In this document: piece by piece, positions 20,101-46,611 of the stretch
Layout: every line of letters starts with the position of its first letter
Position numbering within the stretch: the first letter of the stretch is position 1
NCBI RefSeq assembly: GCF_963921235.1
Contig: NC_086110.1
Location: forward strand, 744,001 to 808,000
Length of the DNA: 64,000 nucleotides
Direction of reading: 5' to 3'
DNA from: Mobula hypostoma
Taxonomy: Eukaryota
Translations under genes and position numbers: made by a program
Notes under the pieces: model-generated
What the model was told of the DNA's origin: nothing
Databases searched by the model: none
What the model saw: the letters and a program-made list of their open reading frames with translations, nothing else

Positions 20101-20900
20101 TCCCCTTAATCTCTCCATTACTTTTGGGTTATTAAGTATATGTGAGTTTAGCCTCCATAGTGTTTTCCTCATTTTCCTTTCCAGGATTAGAGACATAGAG
20201 ACTGGGCTATGATCCGACAGATCAATTGTTGCAATATTACAGTTTTTTTTATCCTGAGTCTATCTGTATTAAAGATAAAGAAATAGTCTATCGTTGAATA
20301 GGCTGAATGAGGGAAAGAGTAATATGTATAATCTTTACTAGTAGAGTGTAATTCCCTCCAGACATCTATAATTCCCAACTCCTGCATCAATGAATTCACT
20401 TTCCGAGTCAGAGGTTTATTCTAAGTAACTTTTCTTGAAGAATCTAATATAGGATTTATTCTAATATTAAAATCCCCTCCACAAATTACTACCCCTCGAG
20501 AACTGACCATTAGGTCAAAAATGTGTCTATAAAATGACCATTCACTACCTGGAGGAGCATAAACATTCAGCAATGTTATTTCTGTACCTTCTATTCTTCC
20601 TGTGATTTTTACAAACCGTCCTTCTTTGTCTCTAGTCTCTGAAATATGTTCATAATTAAGAGTACTTGATATTAAAGTAGCTACCCCTCTTTTGTGACTC
20701 AATTTATATGATGAATAAAATACATGCTTAAAGCCCATTCTTTTTAATTTTCCATGTTCAGATTGGCTCATATGTGTTTCCTGGAGGAAATCTATTTGTG
20801 CCCTCTCTTTTTTCAATTTAGACGTAATCTTCTTTCTTTTAATTGGATTCAAAACCCCATTAACATTATAGGAAATTATTTTTACCAATTCAGTTTGCAT
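17109..20900 (-). pseudogene. L1 ORF2 (APE endonuclease, RT, CCHC), disrupted by four lesions
   Basis: EN motifs SYNVNG, FLQETH, GGDFN and SDH. RT motifs LDAEKAFD, GTRQGCPISP and LFADD. C-terminal CWRRCG..HIFWDC. Nonsense codons at 20421-20423 and 18084-18086, frameshifts at the A8 run 20243-20250 and near 18900. Reconstructed length 1263 aa. Confidence 0.92.
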
Positions 20901-21262
20901 TTTTCTCTAGTAGAAAAAAAGCACTCTCCTTTTCTAACCAAACAGTAAGCAATCCCTTCTCAACAGTAAACCAAGACATATAACCACACCCTAGACATTT
21001 CTGAATGTATAACATTTGAAAATTTTCCCCGACTTCCCACAGTGAGGCCTGAGCACCGACCCGCCTCAGTTCAGAGGGATAACCTCTATCTTCACCCTGT
21101 GTTAGAGGGCCCTCAGCAGTTTGAATAATCATAGAGAATTTTCTCCTATTTATGTCTCGACCATATTGCTATCATTCAAGTTATTCCGCCTAGATTATTT
21201 TCAGTTACCAGTTTTCATTTTACTTTTAAGTCCGATTTACTCTTTTCAGTCATTTCTCTTAA

Positions 21263-22231
21263 TTAATCTGTATTCTCTGTACATTCGCGTCTGAATATTT
21301 GCAGCTTTTCCTTGTAGTTTGACACTCTGCTTCGTGTGGAGCGTCCTCGCCCCACTAACTGCCACGACTTCTGCCGAATCCTCTCCAGTAGCGACTCCGG
21401 TTGGGTGATAACTTTAACAGGTAGTCCCCGGTCCGCCAGGTCCGACGTTGCCTCCTCCACCGTAGCGTAAGTTTTTGTCCCTACGTCGTAAAAGACTCTC
21501 AGCCGAGCTGGATACAGGGTCTGGAATCTGATGTTGTTTTCCTTCCGGACTCTCCGTGTTTCCATATATTCCTTCCGTCCGGCAAGAATCCCCGGTGCGT
21601 AGTCGTGGTCTAAACTGATTTTACATTTGTTCCACATGAAACCTTTCTTTTGCCATGCTCTTTTAAGCACCTCTTCCTTCGTTCTGTAACTGAGAAATCT
21701 GGGCTGGGCGCCTGCCGGAGGCTGTGGTGCCAACGCGCGGTGAGCACTTTCTATCTGTAGGTCTTTTGCGGCCGGTATATCAAGGTTCTCTCTAAGCAGC
21801 TTCTCCACGAAGGGAATCATCAATCCGGGTTTACCTTCGGTTCCTTCGGGAACTCCGTAGATCCTCACATTTTCCCTTCTCGAGCGGCCTTCTTGATCTA
21901 TTAGTTTCCACTGGAGTTGGTCTTGTAGCTTCAGCATTTCTGCTATCACCTCCTCTGCGTTTTGTAGCTTCTCTTCAATTCCAACAATCCTCGCTTCGGC
22001 TTCATCTATCCGCGAGTTAGTTTTTACTATTTCTCCTTTAATATCTTCCAGCTGTTTGCTGTTATCTTGTCGGAACTCGCGAATCTCTGCGAGAATCAAA
22101 GACAAAGTCACCGATTCCCCCTCATTATCTCTGTCCTGGCTTGCCGTGGGAGAGCTAGGCCCTTCGCCTTGCTGCATCTCTTTATGTTTATCAGCCTTCA
22201 GAGCGGACTTTTGTTTCTTGTTCTTAGACAT
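21263..22231 (-). CDS. L1 ORF1p (coiled coil and RRM/CTD), open, 322 aa from ATG 22231
   Basis: EGRSRRENVRIYGVPEG, DLQIESAHRAL and FQTLYPARLRV are L1 ORF1 motifs. Confidence 0.9.
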   Translation of the reverse strand: MSKNKKQKSALKADKHKEMQQGEGPSSPTASQDRDNEGESVTLSLILAEIREFRQDNSKQLEDIKGEIVKTNSRIDEAEARIVGIEEKLQNAEEVIAEMLKLQDQLQWKLIDQEGRSRRENVRIYGVPEGTEGKPGLMIPFVEKLLRENLDIPAAKDLQIESAHRALAPQPPAGAQPRFLSYRTKEEVLKRAWQKKGFMWNKCKISLDHDYAPGILAGRKEYMETRRVRKENNIRFQTLYPARLRVFYDVGTKTYATVEEATSDLADRGLPVKVITQPESLLERIRQKSWQLVGRGRSTRSRVSNYKEKLQIFRRECTENTD

Positions 22232-22371
22232 CAACCTTGCCCCTTTTATTAATATACTTATGCAATATTAAGTATTTGTCTAAATTCGATTTTGGGGCAG
22301 TTTACCTTCTTTTTTGTCGAGAGACCTTTTCCTTACGCCGCCATTCCCTTGATGATCCGGAAGTCCTCCTC

Positions 22372-26747: not shown

Positions 26748-28233
26748 TGTTATGGTCCAGTCCGTGAACTCCGCATTCCGGTTCACTGTCCGGTCCATCG
26801 TCCGTTATTCCATGTTTTCTGGTTTTCCCTTTTTTCTGTTGGGTTCTCTAATTGAGGCAGCTGATTCACATTTTGTGCTGGCTACATAAATAGCTCCTTT
26901 GTTCAGCTTCAGTTGCTGGATTGTTCCCGTCAAAACGCCCTATCTGAATCCCTTCTCTGCCCCTTCCTCCTGAAGCCTTGCCCGACAACCAATGTCTGAA
27001 GCCTTGCCTGCAACCTGTGTCTATAGCCTTGCCTTGCCTCGCCTGAAGCCTTGTCTGCCGTGAAGCCTTACCTCGCCTGCAACCTCGCCAGCACCACTGT
27101 CAAGTTCAACAGTCGGAGCAAGACCAGAGCCTTTATGTGTCTGGATAAGAAACTATCTGTCATTGTTTGGAACTGCTCCTCTGTGTCCACGCCTTCGATA
27201 GGTACTTTCGGCCGTTTGCCGCTGGCTAGTATTGAGAACTGTCTCTGTGTCCACGCCTTCGCTAGGTAGGTCCGGCCATTTGCCGCTATCTGGTGTTATA
27301 AACTGCCTCTCTGTGCTCTGTTACTAGTCCCGGCTCTACGTCCTGCTTCCTACGAAGGGTCCTGACTCTGTGTAAAGCCCAGGCCCCAAGTCCTGTTCCC
27401 AAGGAGGGGTCACGGCTCTGTGTTCCATGTCTCTGCGTTCCTGTCATCTCAAGTCCAAGGCTCGGTGTCCCTGCCCTCCCTCGAACAAGGTTCTGCGTTC
27501 CTGTCTCCGAAGCCCAAGGCTCTATGTTTTGCCTTTATGACTCCCTTCAACCAGGGCTCTGCGTTCCTGTCTCCCTCGACCAAGTCAAGGCTTCGTGTTC
27601 TCGTCCTGCCCATGTGCCTCGTCCTGTCCGTTTGTGTTGTCCAGTGCTGGATTTCCCTCGTCCTGTATTGGCTTGTCTTGCCTAGGAGTCTCTCGTTCTG
27701 TCCTGTAGCCGCGCCTAGTTCTGTCTCCCAAGACCACATCAGTTCTTCGCCTAGTTTCGGATTCCGAGCCGGAGTTAAGACCCAGGTTCTGTGTCCTTGT
27801 CCAGGCTCTGGCTCGGAGTTCAAACCCAATCTGGTCATGTCCTCGCCTCGAGGAACACAAGACTCGTCCTGTCCTCGCCTCGAGGAACCCAACCCACGAA
27901 GAACCCAGTCCTCGAGGATCCCAAGCCATGTCCAGTCCTGTAGGCACGTCATGTCTTCGCCTAGTTCCGGCGTCCGAGCCCGAGACAGGACCCAGGTTCT
28001 GGGTCCTTGTCCAGTCTCTGGCTCGGAGTACAAGCCCAGGCTCCTAGTTCTCAGTTCCTAGTCCTGGTCCTGCTTGCCTAGCCAAAGTTTGTGTTCTTGT
28101 CTCAGCTCCTAGTCTGCCTCCAGTTACGTCCCTTGCTGGGTTAACAGGTCTAGTCTCTAGTCCTGTCCTGCTCGTAGTACTTCAGTGTTTGTGTATGGCA
28201 TTTGGTTCTGCCTTCAACGCTCCGGTTGTGACA
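26748..28233 (+). mobile_element. Solo LTR (1486 nt) inserted in a CR1 3' remnant
   Basis: Termini TGTTATGG..GTTGTGACA. Flanks are GATAG (26743-26747) and GACAG (28234-28238). Internal repeats are shared with the 2738-5919 LTRs. Confidence 0.8.
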
Positions 28234-28319
28234 GACAGACAGTGTAACTTGGGAACAACTGTTCAAAATTAGAGGGCGGAATTTAAAACAAGAGTGCGTA
28301 TGTGAGTCATAGGGTGTAG

Positions 28320-28325
28320 TTTATT
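28320..28325 (-). terminator. Candidate polyadenylation signal AATAAA for the receptor gene
   Basis: Plus-strand TTTATT about 310 nt past the stop codon. It lies in a degraded CR1 remnant and is unverified. Confidence 0.3.
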
Positions 28326-28632
28326 TGGAATGAGCTGCCCGGAAGGTAATGGAGGCAGCTACAACCAACAGTTAAAATGTATTTGAACTGGTGATTATAT
28401 TGTAAAGTGTCGTGTGATGCGCGCCCAATGCTGCTAATAGGGATTTCGTTTCTATACACCTGCTGTGCTGAACACGATTTCCTATTCAGTGGTCCATTAA
28501 TCGTAGTTTTTTTTTTTTTTGTTTTGTTGGAATTGGTGATTTCTCATTAAAATCCTTTGCTTACTCCACAGTTATTACGAAACAGTAACAACTCCTCGAC
28601 ACCACGATGGCCAGTAACGAGTAATACAATTA

Positions 28633-28800
28633 TCAATAACTATAAGTTGCTCTTTTCGTTTCCATATTTCTAGCCTCTTCCTTTATCTTTATTCCTGCAT
28701 ACTCGGTCTCATGAGTCTTTTGCACTCTTCTTGCGTTTTTCTGAGAAGCGGCGAGATCCACACATGCATACATAAGTGTATCTTCAGTTCCTTGGATGAT
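28633..28800 (-). CDS. Exon 6: terminal cytoplasmic exon with ITIM (LMYACV) and ITSM (TEYAGI)
   Basis: Acceptor ttgcttccatag|ATC. Translation IIQGTEDTLMYACVDLAASQKNARRVQKTHETEYAGIKIKEEARNMETKRATYSY*. Stop TGA at 28635-28633. Confidence 0.88.
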   Translation of the reverse strand: MIQGTEDTLMYACVDLAASQKNARRVQKTHETEYAGIKIKEEARNMETKRATYSY

Positions 28801-31800
28801 CTATGGAAGCAATCATTAGAGATAAGGAGCTTCTGATCCACTATATTTGAAAACTAATTTAGTCCAAAAGACCAAAAGACAAAGGAGCAGAAGTCGGCCA
28901 TACGGCCCATCGAGTCTGCTCCTCCATTTTATCATGAGCTGATCCATTCTCCCATTGATTCCTATTCCCCCGCCTTCTCACCATAACCTGTGATGCCCTG
29001 GCTACTCAGATATCTATCAATCTCTGCCTTAAATACACCCAATACCTTGGCCTCCACTGTTGCCCACGGCAACAAATTCCATAGATTCACCACCCTCTGA
29101 CTAAAAAAATCCTCGCATCTCTGTTCTGAATGGGCGCCCTTCAATCCGTAAGTCATGCCCTCTCGTACTAGACTCCCTCACCATGGGAAACATCTTTGCC
29201 ACATCCACTCTGGCCATGCCGTTCAACATTCGAAATGCTTCAATGAGCTCTCCCCTCATCCCTCTAAACTCCAAGGAATACAGTCCAAGAGCGGACAAAC
29301 ATTCCTCATATGTTAACCCTCTCATGCCTGGAATCTGGAATTATTCTACTGAATCTTCTCTGTACCCTCTCCAACGTCAGCACATCCTTTCTTAAATAGG
29401 GAGACCAGAACTGCCAACAGTGCTCCAAGTGAGGTCTCGTCACCGCCTTATAGAGCCTCGCATCACATCCCTGCTCCTATACTCTATTCCTCTGGAAATG
29501 AATGCCAACATTGCATTCGCCTTCTTCACCACTGACTCAACTTGGAGGTTACCCTTAAGGGTATCCTGTACGAGGATTCCTAAGTCCCGTTGCATCTCAG
29601 AATGTTCAATTCTTTCCCCACTTAATTAATATTCTGCCCGTTTTTTTTCTGCCAAAGTGCATAACCATACACTTTCCAACACTATATTTCATTGAGCACG
29701 TCTTTGCCCATTCTTCCAATCTATCCAAGTCTTACTGCAGACTCTCCGTTTCCTCGGCAGTTCCGGCCCCTCCACCTATCTTCGTATCGTCAGCAAACTT
29801 AGCCAGAAAACCGTTTATTCCATAATCCAAATCGTTGATGTACAATGTAAAAAGAAACGGCCCGAACTCCGACCACTCTGGAAAACCAGTGGTAACCGGC
29901 AGCCAACCAGAATACGATCCCTTTATTTCCACTCTGTTTCCTGCCAATCAGCCAACGCTCTATCCAACGTATGTAAATTTCCCGTAATTCCGTGGGCGCT
30001 TTTCTTGTTAAGTAGCCTCATGCGTGGCACCTTGTCAAAGGCCTTCTGAAAATCCAAATATACAACATCCACTGCATCTCCCTTGTCTAGCCTACTCGTA
30101 ATTTCCTCAAAAAAAAATTGTAATAGGTTTGTCAGGCAGACTTTTCCTTTAAGGAATCCTTGCTGAGTTCTGCCTATCTTGTCATATGCCTCCAGGTACT
30201 CTGTAACCTCATCCTTGACAACCGACTCCAACAACTTCCCAATCACAGATGTCAAGCGAACAGATCTATAATTTCTATTTTGCTTCCTTACCCGCCTCTT
30301 GAATAGCGGAGTGACATTTGCAGTCTTCCAGTCCTCTGGAACCATGCCAGAATCGATTGACTATTGATAGATCATCGCTAATATCTCAGCAATGTCCACA
30401 GCTACTTCCTTAAGAACACGAGAGTGCATTCCATCTTGTCTGGAAAATTTATACAGCTTTAGGCTATTCATCTTCATGAGTACTTTCTCCGTCGTAATTG
30501 TGACTGCGCACACTTCTCTTCCCTGCGACGCTTGAGTGTCCAGTATAGTGCTGATGTCTTCCTCAGTGAAGACTGTTGCAAAATACTCGTTCAGTTCCTC
30601 CGCCACCTCCTTAACTCCGATTACAATTTCTCCAGCATCATTTTCCATCGGTCCTATATCTACTCTCACCCATCTTTTGCTCTTTATATACTTAAAAAAG
30701 CCTTTAGTATCCTCTTTTGACATTATTTGCTAACTTCCTTTCTTGGTTAATCTTTTCCCTCTTAATGACCTTCTTAGTTTCCTTTTGTAAGGTTTTAGAA
30801 ACTTCCCAATCTTGTTTTCCCACGAATTTTTGCTTCCTTGTATGCCCTCTCCTTTGCTTTAACTTTGGCTTTGACTTCTCTTGTCAACCACGGCTGCATC
30901 CTTTTTCCATTCGAAATTTTATTCTTTTTTGGAATATACCCGTCTTGCACCTCCCTCACTTCTCGCATAAACTCCAGCCACCGCTGCTCTGCCGTCTTTC
31001 CCGCCAGTCTCCCTTTCCAGTCAACTTTGGCCATTTCCTCTCTCATGCCACTGTAATTTCCTTTACACCACTGAAATACCGACACATCAGATTTCGGCTT
31101 CACTTTTTCAAATTTCACAGTGACTTCAATCATGTTAAGATCACTGAATCCTATGGGTTCCTTCATCGCAATCTCTCTAATCACCTCCAGTTCATTACAC
31201 AATACCCAATCCAGTACAGCCGACCCCCTTGTGGGCTCAACAACAAGCTGTTCTAAAAAGCCATCTCGCAGACATTCTACAAATTCTCTCTTGAGATCCA
31301 ATGGCGACCTAATTTTCTGAATCCATTCGCATCTTAAAATCCTCCACAATTATCATAACACCGCCCTTCTGACAAGCCTTGTCTATTTCCTGTTGTAATT
31401 TGTAGTCCACATCCCTGTAGCTGTTTGGAGGCCTATAAATAACTACCATCAGGCTCTTTTTACCCCTGCGATTTCGTAGCTCAACGCATAAAGATTCTTC
31501 ACCTTCCGATCCTATATCACCTGTTTCTAATTATTTAATGTCATTTTTACAAAAAAAAAAGCCACGCCTCCCCCTCTGCCTACCTTCCTATCCTTCCAAT
31601 ACACCCTGTATCCTTGGACGTTCAGCTGCCAGAGACATACATCCTTTAGCCACGTCTCATTGATGGCCACAGTATCATACTTGCCAATCTGTAGCTGTAC
31701 GACAAGATCATCCACCTTATTCCTTATGCTGCGTGTATTTAAGTATAACAGCTTAAGACCAGTATTTGGTACTTTTTGCTTTGATTTCACTGCAACTTTA

Positions 31801-34800
31801 TTGCATTGTAACTCATCCCAATGGTTACAAATTTGCCCCATCACATGCCTGTCTTTCCTGATATATTCACTGCTCGTTATCTTAGATTTATTTCTGTTTT
31901 CCGCTTCCTCTGCTCTGTCATTCCGTTTCCCATCCCCCTGCGAAATTAGTTTAAACCTATCTCTGCCTTAATTACACCAATGAATTGGCCTACACAGCGA
32001 TATGTGGCATCAAATTCCACAAATTCACAACGTTTTGCTTAAAAAAAAAACATCTCTGGATCTCTGCTTTGAAAGGGCGCCCCTCTTTCCTGAGGCTCTG
32101 CTATTTTGTCTGAGATTCTCCGACCATGGAAAACATCCTTTCCAAATCTACCCTGTCTAGGCCTTTCAACATTCGAAAGGTTTCAATGGGATCCCCCTCA
32201 GCCTTTTGAATTCCAGCAAGTGCAGATCCGGACCCTTCAAACTTTCCTTGTGTGATACAGCTTTCATTCCTGGAATCGTCATTGTGAAACTCCTCTCAAT
32301 AAATAAATCGCTGAAGATGCTGCACTGCATAAGTCAGAGATACAGAACAAAAATGAGCACTGCTATTCTAGAACATGAGGTGTTACATGCAAAGTGACAG
32401 TCATTCTGTTGCTCTAATTATGTGTTCCTGATAATGGGTGTATGTGCAACATATGCTGCGGATATTCTACGAGTCTGTGGTGTCCAGTGCTATCATTTGT
32501 TGCTGTTTTGCGCTGGGTCAGCTGGCTGCGGGAAGCAGACACCAACAGAATCAAGAAACTCATTCGTAAGGCCAGTGATGTTGTGGGGATGGAACTGGAC
32601 TCTCTCACGGTGGTGTCTGAAAACAGGATGCTGTCTAAGTTGCATACCATCTTGGTCAATATCTCCTATCCACTACATAATGACCTGGATGGGCACAGAA
32701 GTACATTCAGCCAGTGACTCATTCCACCGAGATGCAGCACTGAGCGTGATAGGAAGTCATTCCTACCTGTGGCCATCAAAATTTACAACTCCCCACTTGG
32801 AGGGTCAGACACCCTGAGCCAATAGGCTGGTCCTGGACTTATTTCTTAATTTACTGGCATAAATTGCATATTACTATTTAACTATTTATGGTTCCATTAC
32901 TATTTATTATTTATGGTGCAACTGTAACGAAAACCAATTTCTCCCGGGATCAATAAAGTATGACTATGACTATATATAAACCCCTATATATGTCATAATA
33001 TTAATCTTACCTGATTTTCCAGGTAGCGACTTAAGTTCTCATCACTTTCGGCTACAACTAGAGGAAATAAAAAGTGACCAATTTCATCCTCAGCTTGTGA
33101 ACAGTTGCACCGAATGTTATTGAATATTCCAAAAGTAAACAGATCGGTTCGAAATAGGCCAGTGATCTGATACAATTCTTGTCATTTTATCAAACCACCC
33201 AATGATGATATTACTGGTGATAAAAATGGACCTAGTGTATGCGTAGAAATGTTCAAACTCTGTGGCTTGCATATGTTCTCCTGCGGCAACAAACGTTCTA
33301 AATTTGTAACACTAATTGCAGAATTAACAACATTGTTTTTAGTTGTTGCAAAATTTAGTAACATCGAGTAAAAATGCGTTTTAAATCTTGTTCTGCACAC
33401 AACACTCAGTTGTCGGATAGACTCTCAAGCACATCTACTTAAACCTATTTCTTAACATGAATGTTTTACCCTTCTCACTGCCATTTCAACTCCAATATGC
33501 TAGTGAAACTAAATATGGACCAAGGCAATGTAAAGACTTACCTTCAGTCTTGTCTACTCTGAAACGTCTGATAAGTAACAACAGCGCGAGGATAATGACT
33601 CCGCATGCTGCAAATGCACCCGTGAGGATTAAGATGAACTTGTCTCTGCTTTCTGAGGTGTGCAATAGAAGTCAAATATTAGCATTTTACGGAGATTAAA
33701 CAATTGAATCACGTGTACCGCGGACGTAAAGAATCCGATCCGTACTTTCTCTCGCATCTTGACCACATTGGCTTCGTAGTAAATCGCAAATTGAAATAAA
33801 ACGTGGATTATACGTAGGACATTACTAAGTAATTATATCAATATTTAATTCAGCTTATTTTCATCAGTAATTCTGTACTCTTGAATAAGTTGATAAGGCA
33901 TGGATTGAAGCGAGGGCTGGCAAATATACGCAAGCGACCTCAGGTCAAAGAATATGATGATGCAAAATCGAATTTCTAGGTACAGTTGTGAATTGTGCCG
34001 GCAAAATTTAGCAGATACGAACTCTGATATAATAGACAGGCAGGCCAATATAAGGTCTAGCAGCTTGGTGTGCAGAATTAGGGATATCAGTATGTTTTAA
34101 ACCAGAGGAAGGGAAAACCAGCTTACATTTATTTATAGTATCATGTCAGGGCATGTTGCGAAGATGATAGTAAGGCTTATGGAATTTGTCGGCACAAATG
34201 TGGAATCTGAAATAAGTGAACTCACGCTGCATTTGTATTGAACTATGGTCTCTTATATTGTGATATTGTGTTCAATTATAGTAAGATTGTGACGCGTTAG
34301 AGAGGATGCAGGAAAGTCTATTTCTGTTAGAGATGCAGTCGAAACTGCATGCATTCTTCACTTTGCTCAGTCGTGGAGAAGATAACTGAAGACCCACGCA
34401 CACCGATTATGAAACATTCTGTTTCCTTACGCGAATATTTTTGTACTACTGATTTATATATGTAACTTATAGTAGGTCGATGACTGCATTGTACTGCTGT
34501 CAAACAACAACAAATTTCAGGTCATGTAATTCAGTGATCAGAAAATTCAGTGAATCTGATCGTGCAAAGTGGAGATCACATAAAATTACATAAAATGCAA
34601 GTCAGCATTGCCGATAACAGGGATTTAGAAAGACAGGATCTGCAAAAGTCAAGGAGTTATGCCATTTATTTTTGCATATTATTTCTTGAAGCAGGAAACA
34701 GCAGCAGTATAATATGATCTCTAACTCTTCCTTATATAGCCAATGCCTTACATTTTGCTTTCCCCCTTTGAATATGCTCGCTTCGTCACTGTTTGTGAGG

Positions 34801-37800
34801 AATTGATAAATACCAGACATAAAACATGTGGTTAAGCATATAAGCCTCTTACCCAATATGATTCTGTATGACTCGGAAGCTGGCTCCTTCATAGATTCAT
34901 GAAACACCTGGCAAGTATAAACATACCCGCTTTCTGTTACATTGAGGGAGCTTGAAACGAGATATAATCCCTCCTCGTTCTGCATTCGTGTGGTATGCAT
35001 TCCTGAAGTGATTTTGAATTCATTTTTGTACCATATGAGCTTATAGTCCTTCGGGAAAAAAGCAGCAGTTGTGCACGTCAGAGCCGCGGAAGGAGCGTTC
35101 ACTTCGGTGATTTTCAACGGAGCTGGCGGAACTGCAAATGATTAAAAAAAAAAGACGAGAGCTAAAATCTCTAAGCGCGCATTTATCAGAGAAAATAATC
35201 GCCGACAGAGAAGTATTCTTCACAACCTGGAACGTTAATCTGAATTTAACTTGAAAACATTAATCCCAAATCAAGCATGTTAAACATTTCTGCATGACGT
35301 TTTATGCGGCGATATAAATATTCGTTAGTAGTTTTTTTTGCATTGAATAGAACACTTTCAACTCAGGTGAACGTATCACGGAGAAATTAGATAAAACCTT
35401 TCCGTGTTACTATTTAACTACGTGACCACTATTTATTTCTCCTTATTCCACATGCAAAAAGCTGCAATAAGATTAGTTTGTTTTTTTGTAAATTTGTCTA
35501 ATCTTAAATCAACATTTTATACATGATTGGATTTACATTGTGAGAACGTTCTGCACGTTCTCTAATGTGTTGTGCTGTAAAGCATTTCGATTAGGTCCTC
35601 GTAATTCTTCTCATATTCTATATGCCGTAATGGTTATACGCCGAAACAACAGAATCCCACTACATATTACACAAACACATGACCTTTTTTTTTGCAAATA
35701 CTGAATTCAGTTTGAATCCCATTATATCTTCCATCGACTCTTCATACCGATTGAAAATATATACACGTTTAGTCACGTCAATTACCTTACAGCGTGTTGC
35801 ATATAAAAATAATTTGATGGTACAGAAGACCTATTTTAGCTAACGTATGCAATTAAATTTATCGTTAGTTTTATTCTAATTGTGTTGTTATCAAATGTTT
35901 ACTTGTATTGTATCGGATCCTGCGTAATAATTATTTCATTCTCCTTTATACTTGTGTACAGGAAGTTACATGAAGCAATCTTGAATCCTGAATTTTGGAC
36001 CTTTACTGCAGATACCAGTTCCACATTTCGGATTGGTATTGGTTCCACAGAACGAATCGGGTGGGCGAGATTGAGTCAAAACACAACGGGAAGAGTTGAT
36101 AACAAAACGCAGTTTAACTATTTTTGGAGAAACTTAAGGGAAGGAGGTTTTAAACGCAAGGTGGTCTACACTATCTAGTATGATTAACGGCCGAAATTTT
36201 ACAATGCAGAATGACGTGCGAGATTTTGATTACTGACACAGTGATGCAAAATGATGCAGTGAGTAATTTATAATACCATCGATTGTGTTCCTATCAAAAA
36301 CAATTTAAGGAAAGAACGTTCAATTAAGAATGTAATTCATCAGCAATAGAAAAACCCAAGAAGCTTTTGTGAGAACAAATCTCCTTGTACAGAGTGTAAA
36401 TCCTACACTAGGTTTAGTGAGAAAAAGAGATCGTTTTATAAGCAGAAATAAAAAAGCCACTTTTAAATCAGGAATAAGTGTTGTGTCAACTGTTCTGTAA
36501 CTCGCTTAATAAAATGTTACTATTTAGAGAGGATGGAATAATGATATCTACCTGAGTGGACTGGAAGTGGAAATCAGTATATATGGAGAGGATATGGAAC
36601 TTGTGCGTGATGCAATTGTTAGTTGAAATTAGAGCGGCACAACAGCATTCTGTATAATCGACAGGCATTGAAATGTCAACTGATCAAATTCCTATAAGGA
36701 CAATAATTAAATCTCTCAGAATTCATCACACATACAATTGGTTATCCAACAATGCTCTAATCGATGTCGCAATAAGACTGCTAATTCCAACATGTTTACC
36801 CGGAACAAACCTGTTTGCAATACGAAAAATAACGTATAGCGATGTGCTCTATTTTCTACATTAAACAAGAACAATGCTTAAACAATAATTGGGAGTTCCA
36901 TAGAGAGGGTTGACATAAACAGAGCCCTAGTACCGTACGTGCCTAATCCCTCAAAGTACTGACACAGTTGAGAAATGTGGCGAATAAGGCAGTTTGATAT
37001 TCCTGCCTGCGTTGGTCAGGAATTGGGACGTCAGGCTGAAATTGCACAAGTCGTTGGTGAGAACATACTTGAGGTATTGTCCATGGTCCTCTTAACCTAG
37101 CCACAGCATAGATGTCATTAATCTGGTATGAGTGCGTGCAGCATTGGCTCTGCAGGATTTCATTTACTTTGGAGAATCTACGACTCTTTGTCAGCAGAGA
37201 AGGAGGTCGAACAGTGATCTGATAGATGTTTATAAAGTTATAAGGACCAAGATAATGTGGGTAGTCAAAGTCTTCTTTCCACATTCTCGGTGTTTGCAAC
37301 TGGAGGGATGGGTTTAAAATGAATGGGCATAGGTTTAAATTGAACCTAAAAGGTATCTTTTTCTGCACACTTGGCAGTTGGTACATAAAATGACATGCAC
37401 GAGGAAGCTGAGGAAGCGGGATAAAATGATAATGCCAAAAAATATAAACATTCAGACATGCCCATGAATAGAAAAAAAATGTGTTCAGGGATATTGGGGT
37501 TTGTTCGGCATGTCAGATTTAGGTTGAGAACTGTCCGTCTAGGTTATATAAATCTATGACTCGTGTGAAAAAAAAATCAAACTAATGTTGTGCATTTTAA
37601 TAACCCTACAATGTCAGCGGGTAATTGGTTCCTGCAGTTCTCTCCTGTCTGTCAACATGCAAGAAAAACTACAATTTGTTTTCTAACACAGTGAAAGATC
37701 ATGGCCGATCTGCATTTTCACTTTCAAGTTGGAAGGTGAAATGTACCATGACTTTGTCGCCGGGGAGATATCAGTTTGTTAAATCGGCTTGGAGAGTAAA

Positions 37801-40800
37801 GTGATCATGGTTGGCAACGGGAAATGAAACAAAACAGATGTATGAAAAAGAGCCAACAAAACGTAAGTATTATTTCATGCCCAACCCTCCTCCTTTCCAT
37901 GACAGGGTTTCTCTAGATCTAGTTACGAAAAAGAAAAATACCCGATTTAAGAAGAAGCACAGGCGTTCCTGTAGCTTGGTCAGATTCAGCAACAACAGGA
38001 AAGAAGTGATTGTAATTGGACATTGTCCTCAGCTCGTTACGACGCGAATCGTTTCAAAGTAAACATACAGTTGTCAGTTGCCTATAACAAGAATAAATTC
38101 CTACGTCAATAAAGTTAATGATCCAAACACAGCGTAGTGAGATTGTTCCGGTGTAGGTAATTTAGCGACATTTAATGTCATTCCTTTAATAATGCCATGG
38201 AATAGAAACATAGAAAATAGTTGCAGGAGTAGGCCGTTCGGCCCTTACAGCCTGCACCGCCATTCAGTATGATCATGGCTGATCATCCAACTCAGAACCC
38301 TGTACCTGCCTTTTCTCCATACCCCCTGATCCCTTTAGCCACAAGGGCCATATCTAACTCCCTACTAAATATAGCCAATGAACTGGCCTCAAATGTTTCC
38401 TGTCGCAGAGAAGTCCACAGATTCACCACTCTCTGTGTAAAGAAGTTTTTCCTCATCTCGGTCCTAAAAGGCTTTCCCTTTATCCTTAACTGTGACCCGC
38501 CGTTCTGGACTTTCCCAACATCGGAAACAATCTTCCTGAATCTAGCCTTACAATCACTTTATGATTTTGTACGTTTCAATAAGATCCCTCCTCAATCTTC
38601 TAAATTCCAGCGAGTATAAGCCTATTCGATCCAGTCTTTCATCATATGAAAGTCCTGCCGTACCAGGAATCAATCTGGTGAACGTTCTTAGTACTCCCTC
38701 TATGGCAAGAATGTCTTTCCTCAGATTAGGGGACCAAAACTGCACACAGTACATAGAACATAGAATATAGAATAGTACAGCACAGTACAGGCCCTTCGGC
38801 CCACAATGTTGTGCCGACCCTCAAACCCTGCCTCCCATATAAGCCCCCACTTTAGATCCCCACATATATCTGTCTAGTAGTCTCCCAAACTTCACCAGTG
38901 TATCTGCCTCCACCACTGACTCAGGCAGTGCATTCCACGAACCACCCACTCTCTGAGTAAAAAACCTTCCTCTAATATCCCCCTTGAACTTCCCACCCCT
39001 TACCTTAAAGCCATGTCCCCTTGTATTGAGCAGCGGTGTCCTAGGGAAGAGGCGCTGGCTATCCACTCTATCTATTCCTCTTATTATCTTGTACACCTCT
39101 ATCATGTCTCCTCTCATCCTCCTTCTCTCCAAAGAGTAAAGGCCTAGCTCCTTAATCTCTGATCATAATGCATACTTTCTAAACCAGGCAGCATCCTGGT
39201 AAATCTCCTCTGTACCCTTTCCAATGCCTCCACATCCTTCCTATAGTGAGGTCACCAGAACTGGACACAATACTCCAAGTGTGGCCTAACCAGAGTTTTA
39301 TAGAGCTGCATCATTACATCGCGGCTCTTAAACTCTATCCCTCGACTTATGAAAGCTAACACCCAATAAGCTTTCTTAACTACCCTATCTACCTGTAAGG
39401 CAACTTTCAGGGATCTGTGGAAATGTACCCCGAGATCCCTCTGCTCCTCCACACTACCAAGTATCCTGCCATTTACTTTGTACTCTGCCTTGGAGTTTGT
39501 CCTTCCAAAGTGTACCACCTCACACTTCGCCGGGTTGAACTCCATCTGCCACTTCTCAGCCCACTCCTGCATCCTATCAATGTCTCTCTGCAATCTTTGA
39601 CAATCCTCGACACTATCTACAACACCACCAACCTTTGTGTCGTCTGTAATCTTGCCAACCCACCCTTCTACCCCCACATCCAGGTCGTTAATAAAAATCA
39701 CGAAAAGTAGAGGTGCCAGAACAGATCCTTGGAGGACACCACTAGTCACAACCCTCCAATCTGAATGTACTCCCTCCACCACCATCCTCTGCCTTCTGCA
39801 GGCAAGCCAATTCTGAATCCACCTGATCGAACTTCCCTGAATCCCATGCCTTCTGACTTTCTGAATAAGCCTACAGTGTGGAACCTTGTCAAATGCCTTA
39901 CTAAAATCCATATAGATCACATCCACTGCACTACCCGCATCTATATGCCTGGTCACCTCCTCAAAGAACTCTATCATTCTTGTTAGACACGATCTGCCCT
40001 TCACAAAGCCATGCTGACTGTCCCTGATCAGACCATGATTCACTAAATGCCTATAGATCCTATCTCTAAGAATCTTTTCCAACAGCTTTCCCACCACAGA
40101 CGTAAGGCTCACTGGTCTATAATTACCCGGACTATCCCTACTACCTTTTTTGAACAAGGGAACAACATTCGCCTCCCTCCAATCCTCCGGTACCATTACC
40201 GTGGACAACGAGGACATAAAGATCCTACCCAGAGGTTCAGCAATCTCTTCTCTCGCCTCGTGGAGCAGCCTGGGGAATATTCCGTCAGGCCCCGGGGACT
40301 TATCCGTCCTAATATATTTTAACAACTCTAACACCTCCTCTCCCTTAATATCAACATGCTCCAGTACATCAACCTCACTCATATTGTCCTCACCATCATC
40401 AAGTTCCCTCTCATCGATGAATAGCGAAGAGAAGTATTCATTGAGGACCTCGCTCACTTCCACAGCCTCCAGGCACATCTTCCCACCTTTATCTCTAATC
40501 GCTCCTACCTTAACTCCTGTCATCCTTTTTTTTCTTCACGTAATTGAAGAATGCCTTGGGGTTTTCCTTTACCCTACTCGCCAAGGCCTTCTCATGCCCC
40601 CTTCTTGCTCTTCTCAGCCCTTTCTTAAGCTTCTTTCGTGCTTCCCTATATTCCTCAATAGACCCAGCTGATCCTTGCTTCCTAAACCTCATGTATGCTG
40701 CCTTCTTCCTCCTGACTAGATTTTCCACCTCACGTCACCCATGGTTCTTTCACCCTACTATTCTTTATCTTCCTCACCGGGACAAATTTATCCCTTGCAT

Positions 40801-43800
40801 CTCGCAAGAGATCTCTAAACATCGACCACATGTCCATAGTATATTTCCCTGCAAAAACATCATCCCAATTCACACCCGCAAGTTCTAGCCTTATAGCCTC
40901 ATAATTTGCCTTTCCCCAATTAAAAATGTTCCCTTCATCTTTGATTCTATCCTTTTCCATGATAATTATAAAGGCCAGGAATCGGTGATCACTGTCCCCC
41001 AGATGCTCACGCACTGAGAGATCTGTGACCTGACCCGGTTTATTACCTAGTACTCGATCTAGTATGGCATTTCCCCTGGTCGGCCTGTCCACATACTGTG
41101 ACAGAAATCCATCCTGGACACACTTAACAAATTCTGCGCCATCTAAACCCTTGGAGATAATCAGGTGCCAATCAATATTAGGGAAGTTAAAGTCACCCAT
41201 GATAACAACCCTGTTATTTTTGCACCTTTCCAACATCTGCCTCACAATCTGCTCACCTGTATCTCTGCTGCTACCAGGGGGCCTTTAGAATACCCCCAGT
41301 AGATTAACTGCGCCCTTCCTGTTCCTGACTTCCACCTATATTGACTCAAAAGAGGATCCTGCTACATTACCCACCCTTTCTGTAGTTGTAATAGTATCCC
41401 TGACAAGTAATGCCACCCCTCCTCCCCTTTTTCCGCCCTCTCTATCCCTTTTAAAGCACTGAAATCCAGGAATATTGAGAATCCATTCCTGTCCTGGTGC
41501 CAGCCAAGTCTCTGTAATGGCCACTACATCATAATTCCATGTATGTATCGAAACTCTCAGTTCATCACCTGTGTTCCTGATGCTTCAGGTGTTGTCTTAC
41601 CGAGCCCTTGACAACTGCAGTGATACCTCGCTGCTGCTGTACTTGAATCCTGTTGCAATGAATGTCAGCATACCATTCGCCTTTTTCAACGCCTGCTGTA
41701 CCTGCATGCCCACTTTCAATGACTGGTGTATAATGACACCCGGATCTCGTTGCACCTCCCCTTTCCTAATCGGCCACCATTCAGATAATAATCTGTTTTT
41801 CTGTTTTTGCCACCAAAGTAGATAACCTCACATTTATCCACATTAACTTACATCTGTAAATTTAAGGTGTTGTAATATCAGGTATTGTAATTTATAATGT
41901 TTGGATTTCATTATTTCCTTAATAAACTGTTTCTTCCATCATTCATTTGATGCTTTCTGACAGTATGCGATTTTCCTCACCGGACGGGGTTCAGATGTAA
42001 CATTCACATACAAGAACAGAACTCAGTGACTACCAAAACCTTTCAACCCCTCACTAGTGACGAAATACTCGACCCCTCTATTTGGTTGTGTCAGAGTAAA
42101 TTACTACTTATTTAACACAATACGTTCTACCCCTATGGTTTAATTCTCTAAACCTGCTGTAGTTCTGTGCAGCCTGAGCATAACACACCGTCACCCAAGT
42201 GCTTGCTTTGTTTGAAACAAAGGGTTGCGGGAAACTTTGGTAGAGGCCTGAAAGATTGTGTTTTGACGAAATCTCAAAATATTCCGTGATATTTCGTCAT
42301 AACTACAACCCAAGCCTATGTAGAGCAAAGGCTTCCAATTCAAGAAAAAAAATGGTGTCCACCCACTGTAAACCGCAAGACCATCCTTCCGGGGAAATAA
42401 TTCAGCGATCCTACCCGGATGTCTGGTAAACATCCTGAATCTGCATACCTAGATGTTCTGTGGAAGATATTCATCAAAGGCTTGTATAGCTCCAGAAGTT
42501 GCGGTAAACGTATATTTCCGGAATAAATAGCATTGCAGCAGGTAAAGGAATAAACAAAAAATGTTTGATGGACGCAGAGGATCGGGAACGCGTGATTGTG
42601 GAGGTCAGCGTGTTGGACCATGCTGCAATCAGAGGCAACCAGGGGAATGAAAAATAATAAGTAACAGGAGGAATATAATAAGCAGAAATTGCAGTAAGAG
42701 TGAAACAATAAAGCTAAAATCTTTAATTCTCTTGTGATCTGGACAGAATTTATAAAGCAAATCTGCCAAAGATATTATACCCTTTGCCATTATTTCAAAT
42801 GAATCTGGTGAAATATTTATTTTAAAATGTTACAGATCATTATTTGTGTAATGTTCTGGACGCTACATGCTTTTGATTTGTCTCTAAGGCTGCAGCAAGT
42901 TATGACAAAATGATGAAAACTCCCTGCCGTTCAGAACGGAATATAAAGAAGGATTTTTTTTTTTTCAGAGGAACATCGTTAACCTGCGGGAAAGACTGGA
43001 AAATAATATTGGAACAAAAAAGAAAAATACCGTCCTTTTTGGGGGTACATATTGCTGTAGCAATTTTCCAACTAGCTTGATGCAGTAATGCAGACGCAAG
43101 GTGAAAAGAGGGCACATAACTAAATAAAGGTTGCTTCCAGTACTGTCATGACAATGATGACCAGAAATTGCGGGTTTCACTGCTGAGCAAAATAAATTAT
43201 AAATTTCCCAGTAACAGCTTCGAAATGTATAACAAGGACATACCATCCCAAGGAGGGTTACAACCGTTAAATGTTCAGGAATTCTGAATTTAACAGATAT
43301 TTCTATTTTTTACATACTTTGGACCAATCTTCTGTTAGACGTTGCATTGATTCTGTGTACAATGCTCAATTGTGTGATTTAAAGTGTTCTGTCTTCCATC
43401 GTGAGCAAACATACTGCCATTTATTTTACCGATACCTGCCTCCAAGACAAACTTATATTACATGCTGTACCGCATTCACAACTGAAACTCGCAAAATGTC
43501 ATGAAATCTTTCATATATTTATAATTATTAATATCATTGTTTTATTTTTACATGTTCTACTGTTTAACTGAGTACTTAAGAATATAAGAAATAGGAGCAG
43601 AAGAAGGCCATCTGGCCCCTCGAGCCTGCTCCGTCATTCAATAAGATCACTGCTGCTCTGGTCATGGACTCATCTCCATATCAACCTGCCTTTTCTCCGT
43701 AATCGTTAATTTCCCTCCTATGCAAAACTTTTATCCAACCTTCTCTTAAATCTATTAACTGAGGGAGCCTCCACTGCTTCACTGGGCAGAGAATTGCACA

Positions 43801-46611
43801 AGTTTAGCATTCTAAACTAAGTAATAAACCGTATTTTTAAATAAAACAGAGAGCAAACTAGAACACGGTCAATACCACTAAAACCGTCTAGTGGTTCCTA
43901 ATAGTTATTGACGGAGGAATTCATACAGTGCACGCTGCTGTGTTTTTTTTACAGAATCAGAATGTACGACAGCAGATATAGTAGCTCACAGGACTAGAAC
44001 CACAATCAGCGGCTTTTCAGACGGCCTTAGATCACCAGGACAATACCAATACGCGCTAACTGTGCTGCTTGCAGTTCGTTGACTCCAGCCTTTATCACCA
44101 TCATTCTTTCAGTCTGATTGATAAGCTATGGGTCTCTGTACCTCCCTCAGCAATTGGATTTTCGACTTGCTAACCTGAAGAAAACAATTTGTATCAATAA
44201 CTCCTCCTCACTGAGGACCAACACTGTCGCATCTCTGGAATGTGCCCTTAGCCCACTTATCTACTCTCTCTATATCCATGGCTATGCGGCTGAGTAATAG
44301 CTAAACTGTCAGCAATAAATTTGTTAATGATACAACAATTGTTGGCAGAATCTCAGATGGAAAGGGCAGGGCGTACAGCAGAGAGTGATATTAGCCAGCT
44401 GAGTGGAGTTGCAGCAACGACCTTTCACTCAACGCAGTCAGATGAGAAAGTTGACCGAGGACTTCAGAAACAGTAGGAGGATGGATCATAAAGCAATCCT
44501 CAGATTTGGAGAGAGTGGGCAATGTCAAGTTCCTGGGTGTCAATATCTCTGGGGAACTAACCTGGTCCTAACATATCGACGTTGCTATAATGTGGGCAAG
44601 TTAGTAGCTATATTTTTTTTGGAAGTTTGAGGAGATCTGGTTTGTCACCTAAGACCCTCGTAAACGTCTAGAGATGTACCAGAAGAGCATTTTGACAGGT
44701 TGCATCACCGTCTGGCATGCTGGAGAGCGACTACTGTACTAGATCGAAAGAAGCTACGGCAAGTTATAAATGAGTCTGTTCTATCATGGGTGCTAGCATC
44801 CATAGTATCCAAGACATCTTCAAGGAGCAGTGTCTCTGGAGGACTGCCTTCATCATTAAGGACTTCCATTACCCAAGACATGTCCTCTTCTCATTATAAC
44901 CCTAAGGAAGGAGGTATGAAAGCGTGAAGACACACACTCAGCGATTCAAAGAAATCCTTCTTCCTCTCTGCTATCCGATCTCTCATGGATAATGAACCTA
45001 TAAACACTACCTCACTGACATCAGCACTGGACTCCAAGGGCGGATTGTTCTGAGTTCAAACCCAGCCGAGTCCCAGCCTGGACAGCACCAGTGTCTGCAG
45101 AGAACAAATGCCCAGCCATCTACTTCCATATCTGCCATGAATACCCTGTATACGCTATGGTCTACGATGTCACGAAGAGTCGAACTCGACTTAAGGACTT
45201 AACAACTGAACAACAACGTTAAATGATTTTGCTGATTTTCTCTTTTTCCTATATTATTATGTTTCATTTGCTTTATATTGTACTGCTGCCGGTACGTTAA
45301 TAAATTTCACGACGTATGCCGACGATGACTTTAGTCCTGATTCTGATTCTGATTAGAAGTTAATTCTGTTTAGAAGTTCTCCAATCGCTAAATACACATA
45401 ACAAATATTTATTCTTTTTTTTTCCATTTGCAAAGTGACAGACAGACTCGAGTTTACAAATAAACTAATCTCGGGCTTTTCTAATGATCGCAGAGTATGC
45501 AACCGAGACATCGGTTGCAATTGATATTTGTACCCGGCTGGAAACCCGAGAAGCGGTTATTTGTTATATATGCTAACAAAACATTAGAACATTTTCCAGA
45601 ATCGTTTTGATATTCTGCAGGTAATCGCTGAATTCTTAACTTACGAGGGACACGACATCATCTGTAACTCACAGTCTACAATCGGATGAAATAATTTCAG
45701 TTAACACATATAACATTCTATTTCAGTAATTGCCTAGCTACGGACTTAAAATCCTTCATTAGATATACATCCCAGGAATTAAATTTCCAGATAAAAAAGG
45801 AGCATCATTTTTTTTTAATTAGAAAACCATGTTCTTTCGGAGATTACACTGTTCCACCAACAGTAAACGGTGGTTATGCAAACCCGAAAGGAAGAATACT
45901 ATTGTGGATAGTGTAGCAGTCCCTTGTTCTACTTTATCAATATATAACGCGCTCCGTTAAATGTAGTCGTTGCATTTGTCTAAGACACGCCGAGTGAGAC
46001 TTACCGTGTACAATAACGTTCGTGCCATTGCCTTGGGAAAATTTTCTTGTCCAGTCTCTCACACTGCAATAATAGATTCCAGAGTCACCGAAGCTCACCC
46101 CGAGGATATGGAATTCGGCAGAACCTTGCTCTGAAGTTATAATACTCATCCTTCTGTCTGCAGTGGCATCTATAAATTGTTTTTGTCCCCCTTTCCTCCA
46201 ATAAACATCCACCAGTGAGTTCTGAGCGAAGATTGGGTAGGTGCAGTAAATTGACACATTTTCACCCTTTGTCTTCGTCACCTGCTCAGGAATCTGGTTC
46301 ACTGTGAACGAGGCCCTGTCAGCAACTGTCAGAATGAAAAATATTCGTTATCAGAGCATAGTGAACGGCTTTATTGACCAGAAAAAAAAACATTAACTGT
46401 CACTGTAAACGAAAACAGGTCAATTTCCTTGTGATTGAAGTAAAATAATTGTAAATATCTAAACTGCGATTTACTAATTGAGCAAACCATACCTCATGAA
46501 GATATCCCCTGCACCCGCTCCGTTAATCAGCATTAACGAGAGAAGCGTATACATACCAGTGTAAGTAATCTGCAGGACTAAGAGATACTGCAGCAGATCA
46601 AATATTTGCAT
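28633..46611 (-). CDS. Six-exon gene for a 326-aa Ig-superfamily inhibitory receptor (leader, VJ, C1, TM, ITIM/ITSM tail); SIRP-like or VJ-C1-like
   Basis: Manual splicing gives exons of 55+321+279+111+47+168 = 981 nt. All introns are GT..AG, phases are 1,1,1,1,0, and there is no internal stop. Domain motifs are read directly from the translation. Orthology is not established. Confidence 0.9.
28868..31960 (-). mobile_element. CR1 ORF2 (EN and RT) with 3' end, in intron 5 of the receptor gene
   Basis: LKLLYLNTRSIRNK, GSAVLDWVLCNE, YLDFQKAFDKVP, KFADDTK and LGLYSLEF, with several frameshifts. Confidence 0.9.
32420..32975 (+). mobile_element. Rex1/Babar 3' fragment with (TATGAC)n tail
   Basis: NRIKKLIRKASDVVG..RKSFLPVAIKIYNS, ending aataaagtatgactatgact. 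Confidence 0.75.
33011..33057 (-). CDS. Exon 5: short cytoplasmic exon VVAESDENLSRYLENQ
   Basis: Acceptor tttttatttcctctag|TT and donor CAG|GTAAGA. Phase 1-0 links exon 4 to exon 6 in frame. Confidence 0.8.
33542..33652 (-). CDS. Exon 4: transmembrane exon ESRDKFILILTGAFAACGVIILALLLLIRRFRVDKTE
   Basis: Acceptor cacctcag|AA. A 23-aa hydrophobic stretch is followed by a basic RRFR stop-transfer. Donor G|GTAAGT. Phase 1-1. Confidence 0.92.
34853..35131 (-). CDS. Exon 3: C1-set Ig domain
   Basis: Acceptor polyT-catttgcag|TT. Motifs LTC, AAFFPKDYKLIWYKN, NEEGLYLVSSSL and YTCQVFHES are C1-set hallmarks. Donor G|GTAAGA. Overlaps ORF 34602..35117. Confidence 0.95.
36930..37450 (+). mobile_element. 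Degraded CR1 3' fragment
   Basis: RRRSNSDLIDVYKVIR, the CR1 C-terminal motif. Confidence 0.55.
37700..37835. promoter_or_regulatory. Candidate intronic enhancer with an IRF element and an ETS-IRF composite site
   Basis: TTTCACTTTC (GAAAGTGAAA on minus) at 37716-37725 and GGAAATGAAA (GGAANNGAAA) at 37820-37829, in non-repeat intron sequence. Confidence 0.3.
38205..41860 (-). mobile_element. Nested CR1s in intron 2: an outer copy (38205-38755 and ~41580-41860) interrupted by an inner copy (~38756-41570) with EN and a 423-aa open RT segment
   Basis: ORF 39252..40523 has the YMDFSKAFDKVPH, GVLQGSVL and DDTK motifs. EN motifs AITETWL and MGDFNFP are present. The outer copy's RT is collinear across the insertion. 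Confidence 0.88.
44000..45355 (+). mobile_element. Degraded Rex1/Babar RT and 3' end, interrupted by a SINE at ~45020-45218
   Basis: ALSPLIYSLY and KFVNDTTIVGRI, ending ctgattctgattctgatt. Confidence 0.7.
45020..45218 (+). mobile_element. tRNA-derived SINE with an RTE-like 3' tail
   Basis: B-box-like GAGTTCAAACC at ~45052-45062. The 3' end gtcacgaagagtcgaactcgactt..aactgaacaacaac resembles RTE/BovB termini. Confidence 0.55.
46005..46325 (-). CDS. Exon 2: V-set Ig domain with a J-like G strand in the same exon
   Basis: Acceptor ttcattctgacag|TT. Motifs IYC (B strand), VYW (C strand), GDSGIYYC (F strand) and FSQGNGTNVIV. Donor G|GTAAGT. Overlaps ORF 45937..46302. Confidence 0.95.
46557..46611 (-). 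CDS. Exon 1: signal peptide MQIFDLLQYLLVLQITYT
   Basis: ATG at 46611, 18 mostly hydrophobic codons plus 1 nt, donor G|GTATGT, then a 231-nt phase-1 intron. This is the typical IgSF leader arrangement. Confidence 0.8.

Follow-up and report, generated by a model that had tools for sequence, protein, structure and literature searches.

What kind of receptor, if any, is encoded between positions 28633 and 46611 of a 64,000-nucleotide (nt) stretch of the genome of the lesser devil ray, Mobula hypostoma (contig NC_086110.1, positions 744,001 to 808,000; this whole stretch is referred to here as the window), and where does it stand relative to the known immune receptors? A first-pass annotation, made from the letters alone, had read the interval as an intact, non-rearranging gene whose six exons, spread over 18 kb of retroelement debris, splice into a stop-free type I protein of 326 amino acids (aa), with an ectodomain in which a variable (V) domain carrying a joining (J)-like strand is followed by a C1-set domain, and with a tail containing an immunoreceptor tyrosine-based inhibitory motif (ITIM) and an immunoreceptor tyrosine-based switch motif (ITSM). 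We found that the gene is real and intact, and that the exact protein has already been predicted by NCBI, so it is not a new discovery. We consider it probable that the gene is an intact member of a cartilaginous-fish family of type I receptors that combine a V domain with a germline-joined J-like strand, a C1-set domain and an ITIM/ITSM tail, that its motifs would make it inhibitory, and that it represents a shortened-tail variant within a paired system of inhibitory and activating receptors.

The gene consists of six minus-strand exons that splice to 981 nt, as follows (TM, transmembrane):

Exon 1, 46557..46611, minus strand: 55 nt; ATG at 46611; leader peptide MQIFDLLQYLLVLQITYT; exits in phase 1.
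Exon 2, 46005..46325, minus strand: 321 nt; V-set domain plus J-like strand FSQGNGTNVIVH; phase 1 in and out.
Exon 3, 34853..35131, minus strand: 279 nt; C1-set domain; phase 1 to 1.
Exon 4, 33542..33652, minus strand: 111 nt; short stalk, TM helix FILILTGAFAACGVIILALLLLI and basic stop-transfer; phase 1 to 1.
Exon 5, 33011..33057, minus strand: 47 nt; cytoplasmic segment VVAESDENLSRYLENQ; phase 1 to 0; part of the RefSeq protein P0158.
Intron 5, 28801..33010, minus strand: 4.2 kb of retroelement sequence; the site of an extra 36-aa exon in relatives.
Exon 6, 28633..28800, minus strand: ITIM LMYACV (Y282), ITSM TEYAGI (Y305), C-terminal TYSY and the stop codon.

All introns are GT-AG and all ten splice sites are intact; the leader, V, C1 and TM exons each exit in phase 1, as is usual for genes of the immunoglobulin (Ig) superfamily. 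The spliced 326-aa model equals the RefSeq/UniRef protein P0158 at every residue, so that the exon structure put forward in the first-pass annotation held to the exact coordinates. P0158 was retrieved in a profile-free search using a close relative as query, and it is a called gene in GCA_963921235.1 spanning 17,979 bases, the length of 28633-46611; NCBI's automatic pipeline has named it ‘tyrosine-protein phosphatase non-receptor type substrate 1-like [Mobula hypostoma]’, i.e. SIRP-alpha-like. The leader-to-V intron measures 231 nt and the V-to-C1 intron 10.9 kb, and the introns contain open reading frames (ORFs) for reverse transcriptase and endonuclease. Exon 5 was placed by homology, as it matches AENDENLSRYLENQ of Mobula birostris proteins (13/14 identical, tblastn), while an AG/GT scan of the interval from the TM exon to the final one returned 1,516 candidates and was of no help; exon 6 is 85-87% identical to the last exon of relatives. 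Additional Ig exons, which the first-pass annotation had named as a way in which its model could fail, did not turn up: tblastn found no further V or C1 exon in the 64-kb window.

The ectodomain proved to be of the predicted kind. The V exon scores as V-set (Pfam 9.6e-10, profile positions 3-109), and the V core residues (C46, W61 and DSGIYYC105) together with the J-like G117-N-G-T120 all lie within exon 46005-46325, where V and the J-like G strand (FSQGNGTNVIVH) are contiguous and run directly into the GT donor. The C1 exon scores better against the Pfam C1-set profile (7.1e-14) than against C2-set_2 (2.8e-6). The hallmarks of a C1-set domain have been given as 13 residues between Cys(B) and Trp(C), a BC loop with (F/Y)(F/Y/H)P, and xVxH following the Cys of strand F, and were applied by Hatherley et al. 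to domains d2 and d3 of SIRP-alpha (PMC2785349). The ray domain has 13 residues between C145 and W159, FFP at 150-152 and C199-Q-V-F-H203 (YTCQVFH), and is a genuine C1-set domain. The cysteine pairs of both Ig domains are intact.

An AlphaFold model built from a 15-sequence family alignment placed both domains with a predicted local distance difference test score mostly above 90 over residues 30-220, followed by a helix at 221-255 and a disordered tail. In a non-redundant structural search, the modelled C1 domain superposed on major histocompatibility complex (MHC) class II and Ig constant domains at 1.3-2.1 Å (1.3-1.6 Å for the membrane-proximal domains of MHC class II and CD1), and the modelled V domain lay ~2 Å from IgNAR V, T-cell receptor (TCR) V-delta (31% identity), CD79b and NKp30. 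The predicted arrangement of the two domains resembles that of B7-H3, B7-H6, PD-L2 and butyrophilins (Z 15-16), the top 50 Foldseek matches in the whole PDB were antibody chains, mostly labelled light chains, and the best PDB matches of V include TCR V-alpha and V-delta, IgNAR V and VL. The ectodomain appears more like antigen-receptor V domains and Ig/MHC C1 domains than like SIRP. As a separate observation, the J-like GxGT holds an N-glycosylation sequon, NGT (46020-46028; N118-G-T120), whose Asn hardly varies within the close clade; a glycan at N118, if present, would occupy the position at which heavy- and light-chain V domains (VH and VL) pack against each other.

On the cytoplasmic side, the TM helix (FILILTGAFAACGVIILALLLLI) is without charged residues, and the tail contains, as had been noticed in the first pass, the ITIM LMYACV (starting at 280) and the ITSM TEYAGI (starting at 303), with the two tyrosines, Y282 and Y305, 23 residues apart. 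Most relatives have four tyrosine motifs arranged in two ITIM-plus-YxxI/T modules (xxYAxL...TVYAQT, then LTYAxLD...TEYAxI), of which the M. hypostoma copy P0158 keeps the distal one. What the first-pass annotation missed is the loss of a tail exon: the closest relatives, namely P0156 of M. hypostoma, P0155 and P0004 of M. birostris and P0157 of Hemitrygon, possess one more exon, 36 aa long (ASE.QD.GSPSYADL.F.RDNK...), which lies between exons 5 and 6 and carries a further membrane-proximal ITIM, SPSYADL. When four versions of this exon were searched against 28,000-34,000 for a remnant (tblastn, word size 2, E up to 1000), only chance-level matches were returned. Because both borders of the 36-aa exon are phase 0, the frame is kept without it, and P0158 is thus a two-tyrosine, shortened-tail version of a three- or four-tyrosine tail.

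To see what is transcribed from the locus, four public RNA runs (X1-X4) were aligned to two stretches of it; runs X3 and X4 come from a second organism, M. birostris-like. The limits of RNA depth over the V exon coincide exactly with 46005 and 46325/6. A 137-nt X1 contig covers 46005-46141 with zero mismatches, across sites at which the paralog P0156 differs, two 126-nt exact-match contigs (X1 and X2) lie on the C1 exon, covering 34953-35078, and a 143-nt X1 contig spans the C1-to-TM joint (33652/34853) with zero mismatches. Variant contigs from the same runs translate to P0156 residues (K38E, G65E, D75E, F90L, G98R and R108S), and those of the second organism to residues like those of M. birostris P0155; since the variant contigs carry the paralog residues, the exact contigs come from the P0158 copy. 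The P0158 copy is transcribed, as seen for parts of its V and C1 exons and for the C1-TM joint. The leader-to-V joint (46325/46557) is present in X2 and X4 contigs that differ from the window at 1-4 sites and so come from relatives, and in a related RNA contig (X2) the 5' untranslated region runs on upstream, reaching at least 46700. Some X3 and X4 contigs join the C1 acceptor to cryptic GT donors within the V exon, at 46063 and 46099 on the minus strand (AGT|GTGAGA, just past the second Cys, and GGG|GTGAGC); both are phase 0 and would shift the C1 frame, and these joins look like unproductive splice variants.

P0158 is one copy of a family common to sharks, rays and chimaeras. When the V exon was searched exhaustively with HMMER against 1.84 billion representative proteins, 203 matches were obtained at E ≤0.001, and the named matches that also have a C1 domain were all from cartilaginous fish, except for one frog protein. 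The named genera are Mobula, Hemitrygon, Hypanus, Leucoraja, Amblyraja, Heptranchias, Heterodontus, Scyliorhinus, Carcharodon, Cetorhinus, Mustelus, Chiloscyllium, Hemiscyllium and the chimaera Callorhinchus, and relatives of the same architecture were found in Mobula birostris, Hemitrygon, Heptranchias, Heterodontus, Scyliorhinus, Carcharodon, Mustelus, skates and Callorhinchus. The suggestion that this may be an uncharacterised inhibitory family of cartilaginous fish is thereby upheld as to the family, with its relatives in sharks, rays, skates and a chimaera, but qualified as to novelty, in that NCBI already predicts the exact protein and it is one of many copies. The automatic names of the members conflict (SIRP-alpha-like, SIRP-beta-1-like, tapasin-related-like, CD276 homolog, NCR3 ligand 1-like, Ig lambda-like, and MHC class I or class II-like). 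A literature search linking SIRP/SHPS-1 with sharks found nothing relevant and no paper on the family came to light, which does not by itself make the family undescribed.

In a maximum-likelihood tree of the V-C1 region, P0158 falls in a shark and ray clade with 100/100 support, inside a ray clade that also has 100/100. Within each species the named members lie on records of the same length, where this is stated, which points to a single chromosome record; the Callorhinchus members are tandem neighbours with compact 5.5-kb genes, and the search for paralogs proposed in the first-pass annotation yielded at least three of P0158 on its own chromosome record. Isoforms that skip C1 and join V to the TM exon are annotated in four species (P0003, P0159, P0009 and P0007; one of them from LOC134356411), a skip that preserves the frame because the exon borders are phase 1. 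Two other members depart from the common layout. Amblyraja radiata P0058 (493 aa) is the sole V-C1-C1 member seen, and its two C1 domains are near-identical, as would follow from a recent duplication or from an assembly or gene-model artefact; Scyliorhinus canicula P0016 (450 aa) has two successive TM-plus-tail units and looks like a gene-model fusion of two tandem genes.

Among the paralogs on the same chromosome record is LOC134356409 (P0001/P0002; M. hypostoma, 251-252 aa), whose V domain is 73% and whose C1 domain is 84% identical to P0158, which carries an Arg in its membrane span (LCRILLGLLV), and whose tail is only a few residues long. Heptranchias P0169 has the same form (span FCRFLLGLMV), and the activating-type chains have in common the span N(L/F)CR(I/F)LLGL(L/M)V, with an Arg-x-Leu-Leu pattern that, we presume, resembles the TCR-alpha membrane segment. 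In the tree, the activating-type P0169 stands beside the inhibitory P0160 (both Heptranchias), and P0002 stands beside M. birostris P0004; this is the pattern that paired receptors kept alike by exchange would be expected to leave. We take the family to form a paired inhibitory/activating system, conserved between M. hypostoma and Heptranchias. P0158 itself has a leader and V nearest to P0156 and P0155 (92-93%) and a C1 nearest to P0004 (89%) and P0002 (84%), vs. 80-81% for P0156 and P0155. P0158 is thus a mosaic, its V and C1 exons having different nearest relatives, and exchange between paralogs is therefore suggested.

How does such a protein compare with systems already known? A PD-1-type tail has the same order of motifs, an ITIM and then, ~23-25 residues on, a TxYxxI ITSM (TEYAGI in the ray receptor), and we take the spacing to be like that of PD-1's own motifs, presumably an arrangement that engages both SH2 domains of SHP-2. 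A pair of one ITIM and one ITSM is sufficient for signalling in PD-1-type receptors. PD-1 differs in having a single V domain, no C1 and no J-like GxGT, and there is no sequence kinship beyond the motifs. With the SIRP family the ray receptor has in common an N-terminal V with a J-like strand followed by C1-set sequence, a type I orientation, an ITIM-bearing tail, a short-tailed partner with a similar ectodomain and a basic membrane residue, and the organisation as a multigene cluster; it differs in having one C1 rather than two, in the Arg instead of Lys of the activating partner, and in that its V and C1 are no nearer to SIRP than to TCR, Ig, B7 and tapasin-type domains (17-23% identity). 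By analogy with these two systems, we file the gene as one that would work like a SIRP/PD-1-type inhibitory receptor: the V domain would bind a ligand, Src-family kinases would next phosphorylate both Y282 and Y305, the stretch so modified would recruit the tandem SH2 domains of SHP-1/SHP-2-type phosphatases, and these would dampen the cell, as for SIRP-alpha and PD-1.

The V-J-C1 order and the phase-1 exon borders recur in TCR and Ig light chains; by contrast, the ray gene has no recombination signal or separate J, no membrane-proximal cysteine for an interchain bond, its own signalling tail and an NGT sequon inside the J-like GxGT. A rearranging TCR or Ig segment is ruled out, V and J being joined in one exon with no recombination signal. 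UrIg and UrIg2 are likewise elasmobranch and non-rearranging, with an unsplit VJ exon followed by C1, and the C1 profile has UrIg2 among its best matches in the PDB; in the construct whose structure was solved, UrIg2 has the layout V-C1-C2-C3 and dimerises through disulfide links (PMC12227049). A UrIg-type protein was also considered and ruled out, as the ray receptor has a single C1, a membrane span and an inhibitory tail. UrIg, NKp30 and PRARP have been discussed as non-rearranging relics (PMC12227049, PMC10751288), in texts in which the words SIRP and ITIM are absent. PRARP (chicken, Fu et al. 2019) and NKp30 resemble the ray receptor in being non-rearranging VJ-type receptors, viewed as remnants of a precursor of antigen receptors (PMC10751288, which cites the PRARP work), but NKp30 has no C1 domain. 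The B7 and butyrophilin proteins, in which a V domain and a CD80-like C domain are arranged in extended fashion and which lack both a J-like motif and an ITIM tail, are alike in the two-domain structural matches noted above. They differ in that the second domain of the ray protein scores far better as C1-set and that the ray protein has both the J-like motif and the ITIM/ITSM tail.

Could the gene then be what its automatic name says, a ray SIRP-alpha, that is, a true ortholog of the mammalian SIRP family with a CD47-like ligand and one C1 domain fewer? We regard membership of the SIRP family as unlikely, though with enough in its favour to be taken seriously: many relatives share the SIRP-alpha-like name, the SIRP-alpha of human, cow and rat rank 3, 4 and 11 in a Swiss-Prot fold search, and the four-tyrosine tail together with the basic-residue activating partner mirrors SIRP-alpha/SIRP-beta as described in PMC12975943. 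Against this, other family members have been auto-named after five different proteins, and in the same fold search SIRP-alpha is level with PD-L1, CD276, tapasin-related protein, TCR-beta and Ig lambda (1e-17 to 1e-14, 17-23% identity). The tail motifs of the family, we assume, do resemble those of human SIRP-alpha. However, the 60 best PDB sequence matches, whether for either domain or for the family profiles, include no SIRP chain, nor do the top 50 non-redundant structural matches, and the only relative with the V-C1-C1 layout of SIRP is P0058, with its recent duplication or artefact. A word-based search with a 15-sequence profile also returned no tetrapod SIRP (only cartilaginous-fish proteins were returned), which reflects a limit of the method and is not evidence of absence.

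That the gene is an intact family member has in turn to be weighed against observations that speak against it. The first-pass annotation had proposed looking for RNA across all five junctions; of these, C1-TM was found exactly and leader-V in relatives only, while the V-to-C1, TM-to-exon-5 and exon-5-to-last junctions of the P0158 copy were not seen in the RNA contigs. Three of the four runs give exon 5 no RNA depth, and of the words sampled from the last exon only 5-7% are present in the RNA runs, so that the transcript's tail is drawn from the RefSeq model and from conservation. The letters joined to 46005 in RNA (X1 and X2) differ from the gene's own C1 start at 2/16 letters and have no other copy in the window besides that C1 acceptor, with its 2 mismatches; in our own reading, these loose ends would fit either the C1 exon of paralogs or a join of V to their TM exon that skips C1, and the paralogs could share the last 30 nt of V. 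One could suppose that two transcription units have been merged, a leader-V unit and a C1-TM-tail unit, and that the 326-aa protein is never made, given that no contig of the P0158 copy bridges the 10.9-kb intron; we hold this to be very improbable, since neither half has another V or C1 exon in the window with which to pair, relatives in nine species show the same V-C1-TM order in far more compact genes, the paralogs' V-to-C1 junction letters are seen at the same donor, and RefSeq predicts the same join. A decaying duplicate, by which we mean a recent extra copy that has partially lost its tail and is drifting to pseudogene status, itself doing little or nothing, is a less remote prospect, yet a distinctly doubtful one. 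The missing ITIM exon and the lower contig depth in X1 (10 for P0158 vs. 31 for the paralog) mean that the P0158 copy could be on its way out, RNA hardly shows its 3' end, the tree gives it no M. birostris ortholog as a partner (P0156 pairs with P0155), and its introns are swollen by retroelements (18 kb vs. 5.5 kb for the chimaera relative). Notwithstanding, the frame, the ten splice sites, both cysteine pairs and the distal ITIM/ITSM are intact, the loss of the 36-aa exon keeps the frame, exact-match spliced RNA exists, and an ITIM plus ITSM pair, as said, is enough for PD-1-type signalling.

The surroundings offer little beyond repeats, as the flanks of the gene within the window hold only retroelements and minisatellites. 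A long retroelement of the long interspersed nuclear element (LINE) type occupies 17109-22234 on the minus strand, with ORFs of 323, 159, 437, 249 and 322 aa broken by frame changes, of which the 437-aa ORF scores as a reverse transcriptase (RVT_1). A GC-rich block (54.5% GC) at 3152-5546 contains two minisatellite arrays, interleaved and built of 35-bp and 58-bp units, which yield long spurious ORFs on both strands, and a similar GC-rich stretch is present at 27400-28060. Within intron 5, a repeat at 32400-33000 reaches a summed RNA contig depth in the tens of thousands over all four runs, presumably from an abundant transposable-element transcript, and the retroelement pieces at 29200-32200 are likewise heavily covered by RNA.

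If the gene is, as we think probable, an intact member of a cartilaginous-fish receptor family, the family may have a wider significance. A tentative and rather unlikely extension is that it represents an overlooked non-rearranging VJ-C1 lineage, distinct from tetrapod SIRPs, that would preserve the pre-RAG V-C1-membrane layout of antigen receptors wired as inhibitory/activating pairs; it would then be a sister or forerunner of SIRPs and of TCR/Ig, and the Arg span of the partner (CRILLGLL) would dock an adaptor bearing an ITAM (immunoreceptor tyrosine-based activation motif). Models of the origin of antibodies and TCRs start from genes with an unsplit VJ exon followed by a C1 domain, and the current discussion of such genes centres on UrIg, UrIg2, NKp30, PRARP and SIRP. 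Here is a large, linked family of cartilaginous fish, with SIRP-style signalling predicted and with activating/inhibitory pairing, to which databases give half a dozen unrelated names, and a unified description, phylogeny and map position of the family would be useful to comparative immunologists. The lost tail exon and the V/C1 mosaic of the P0158 copy are the kind of exchange to be expected in fast-evolving paired receptors; the more interesting question is the place of the family relative to SIRPs and antigen receptors.

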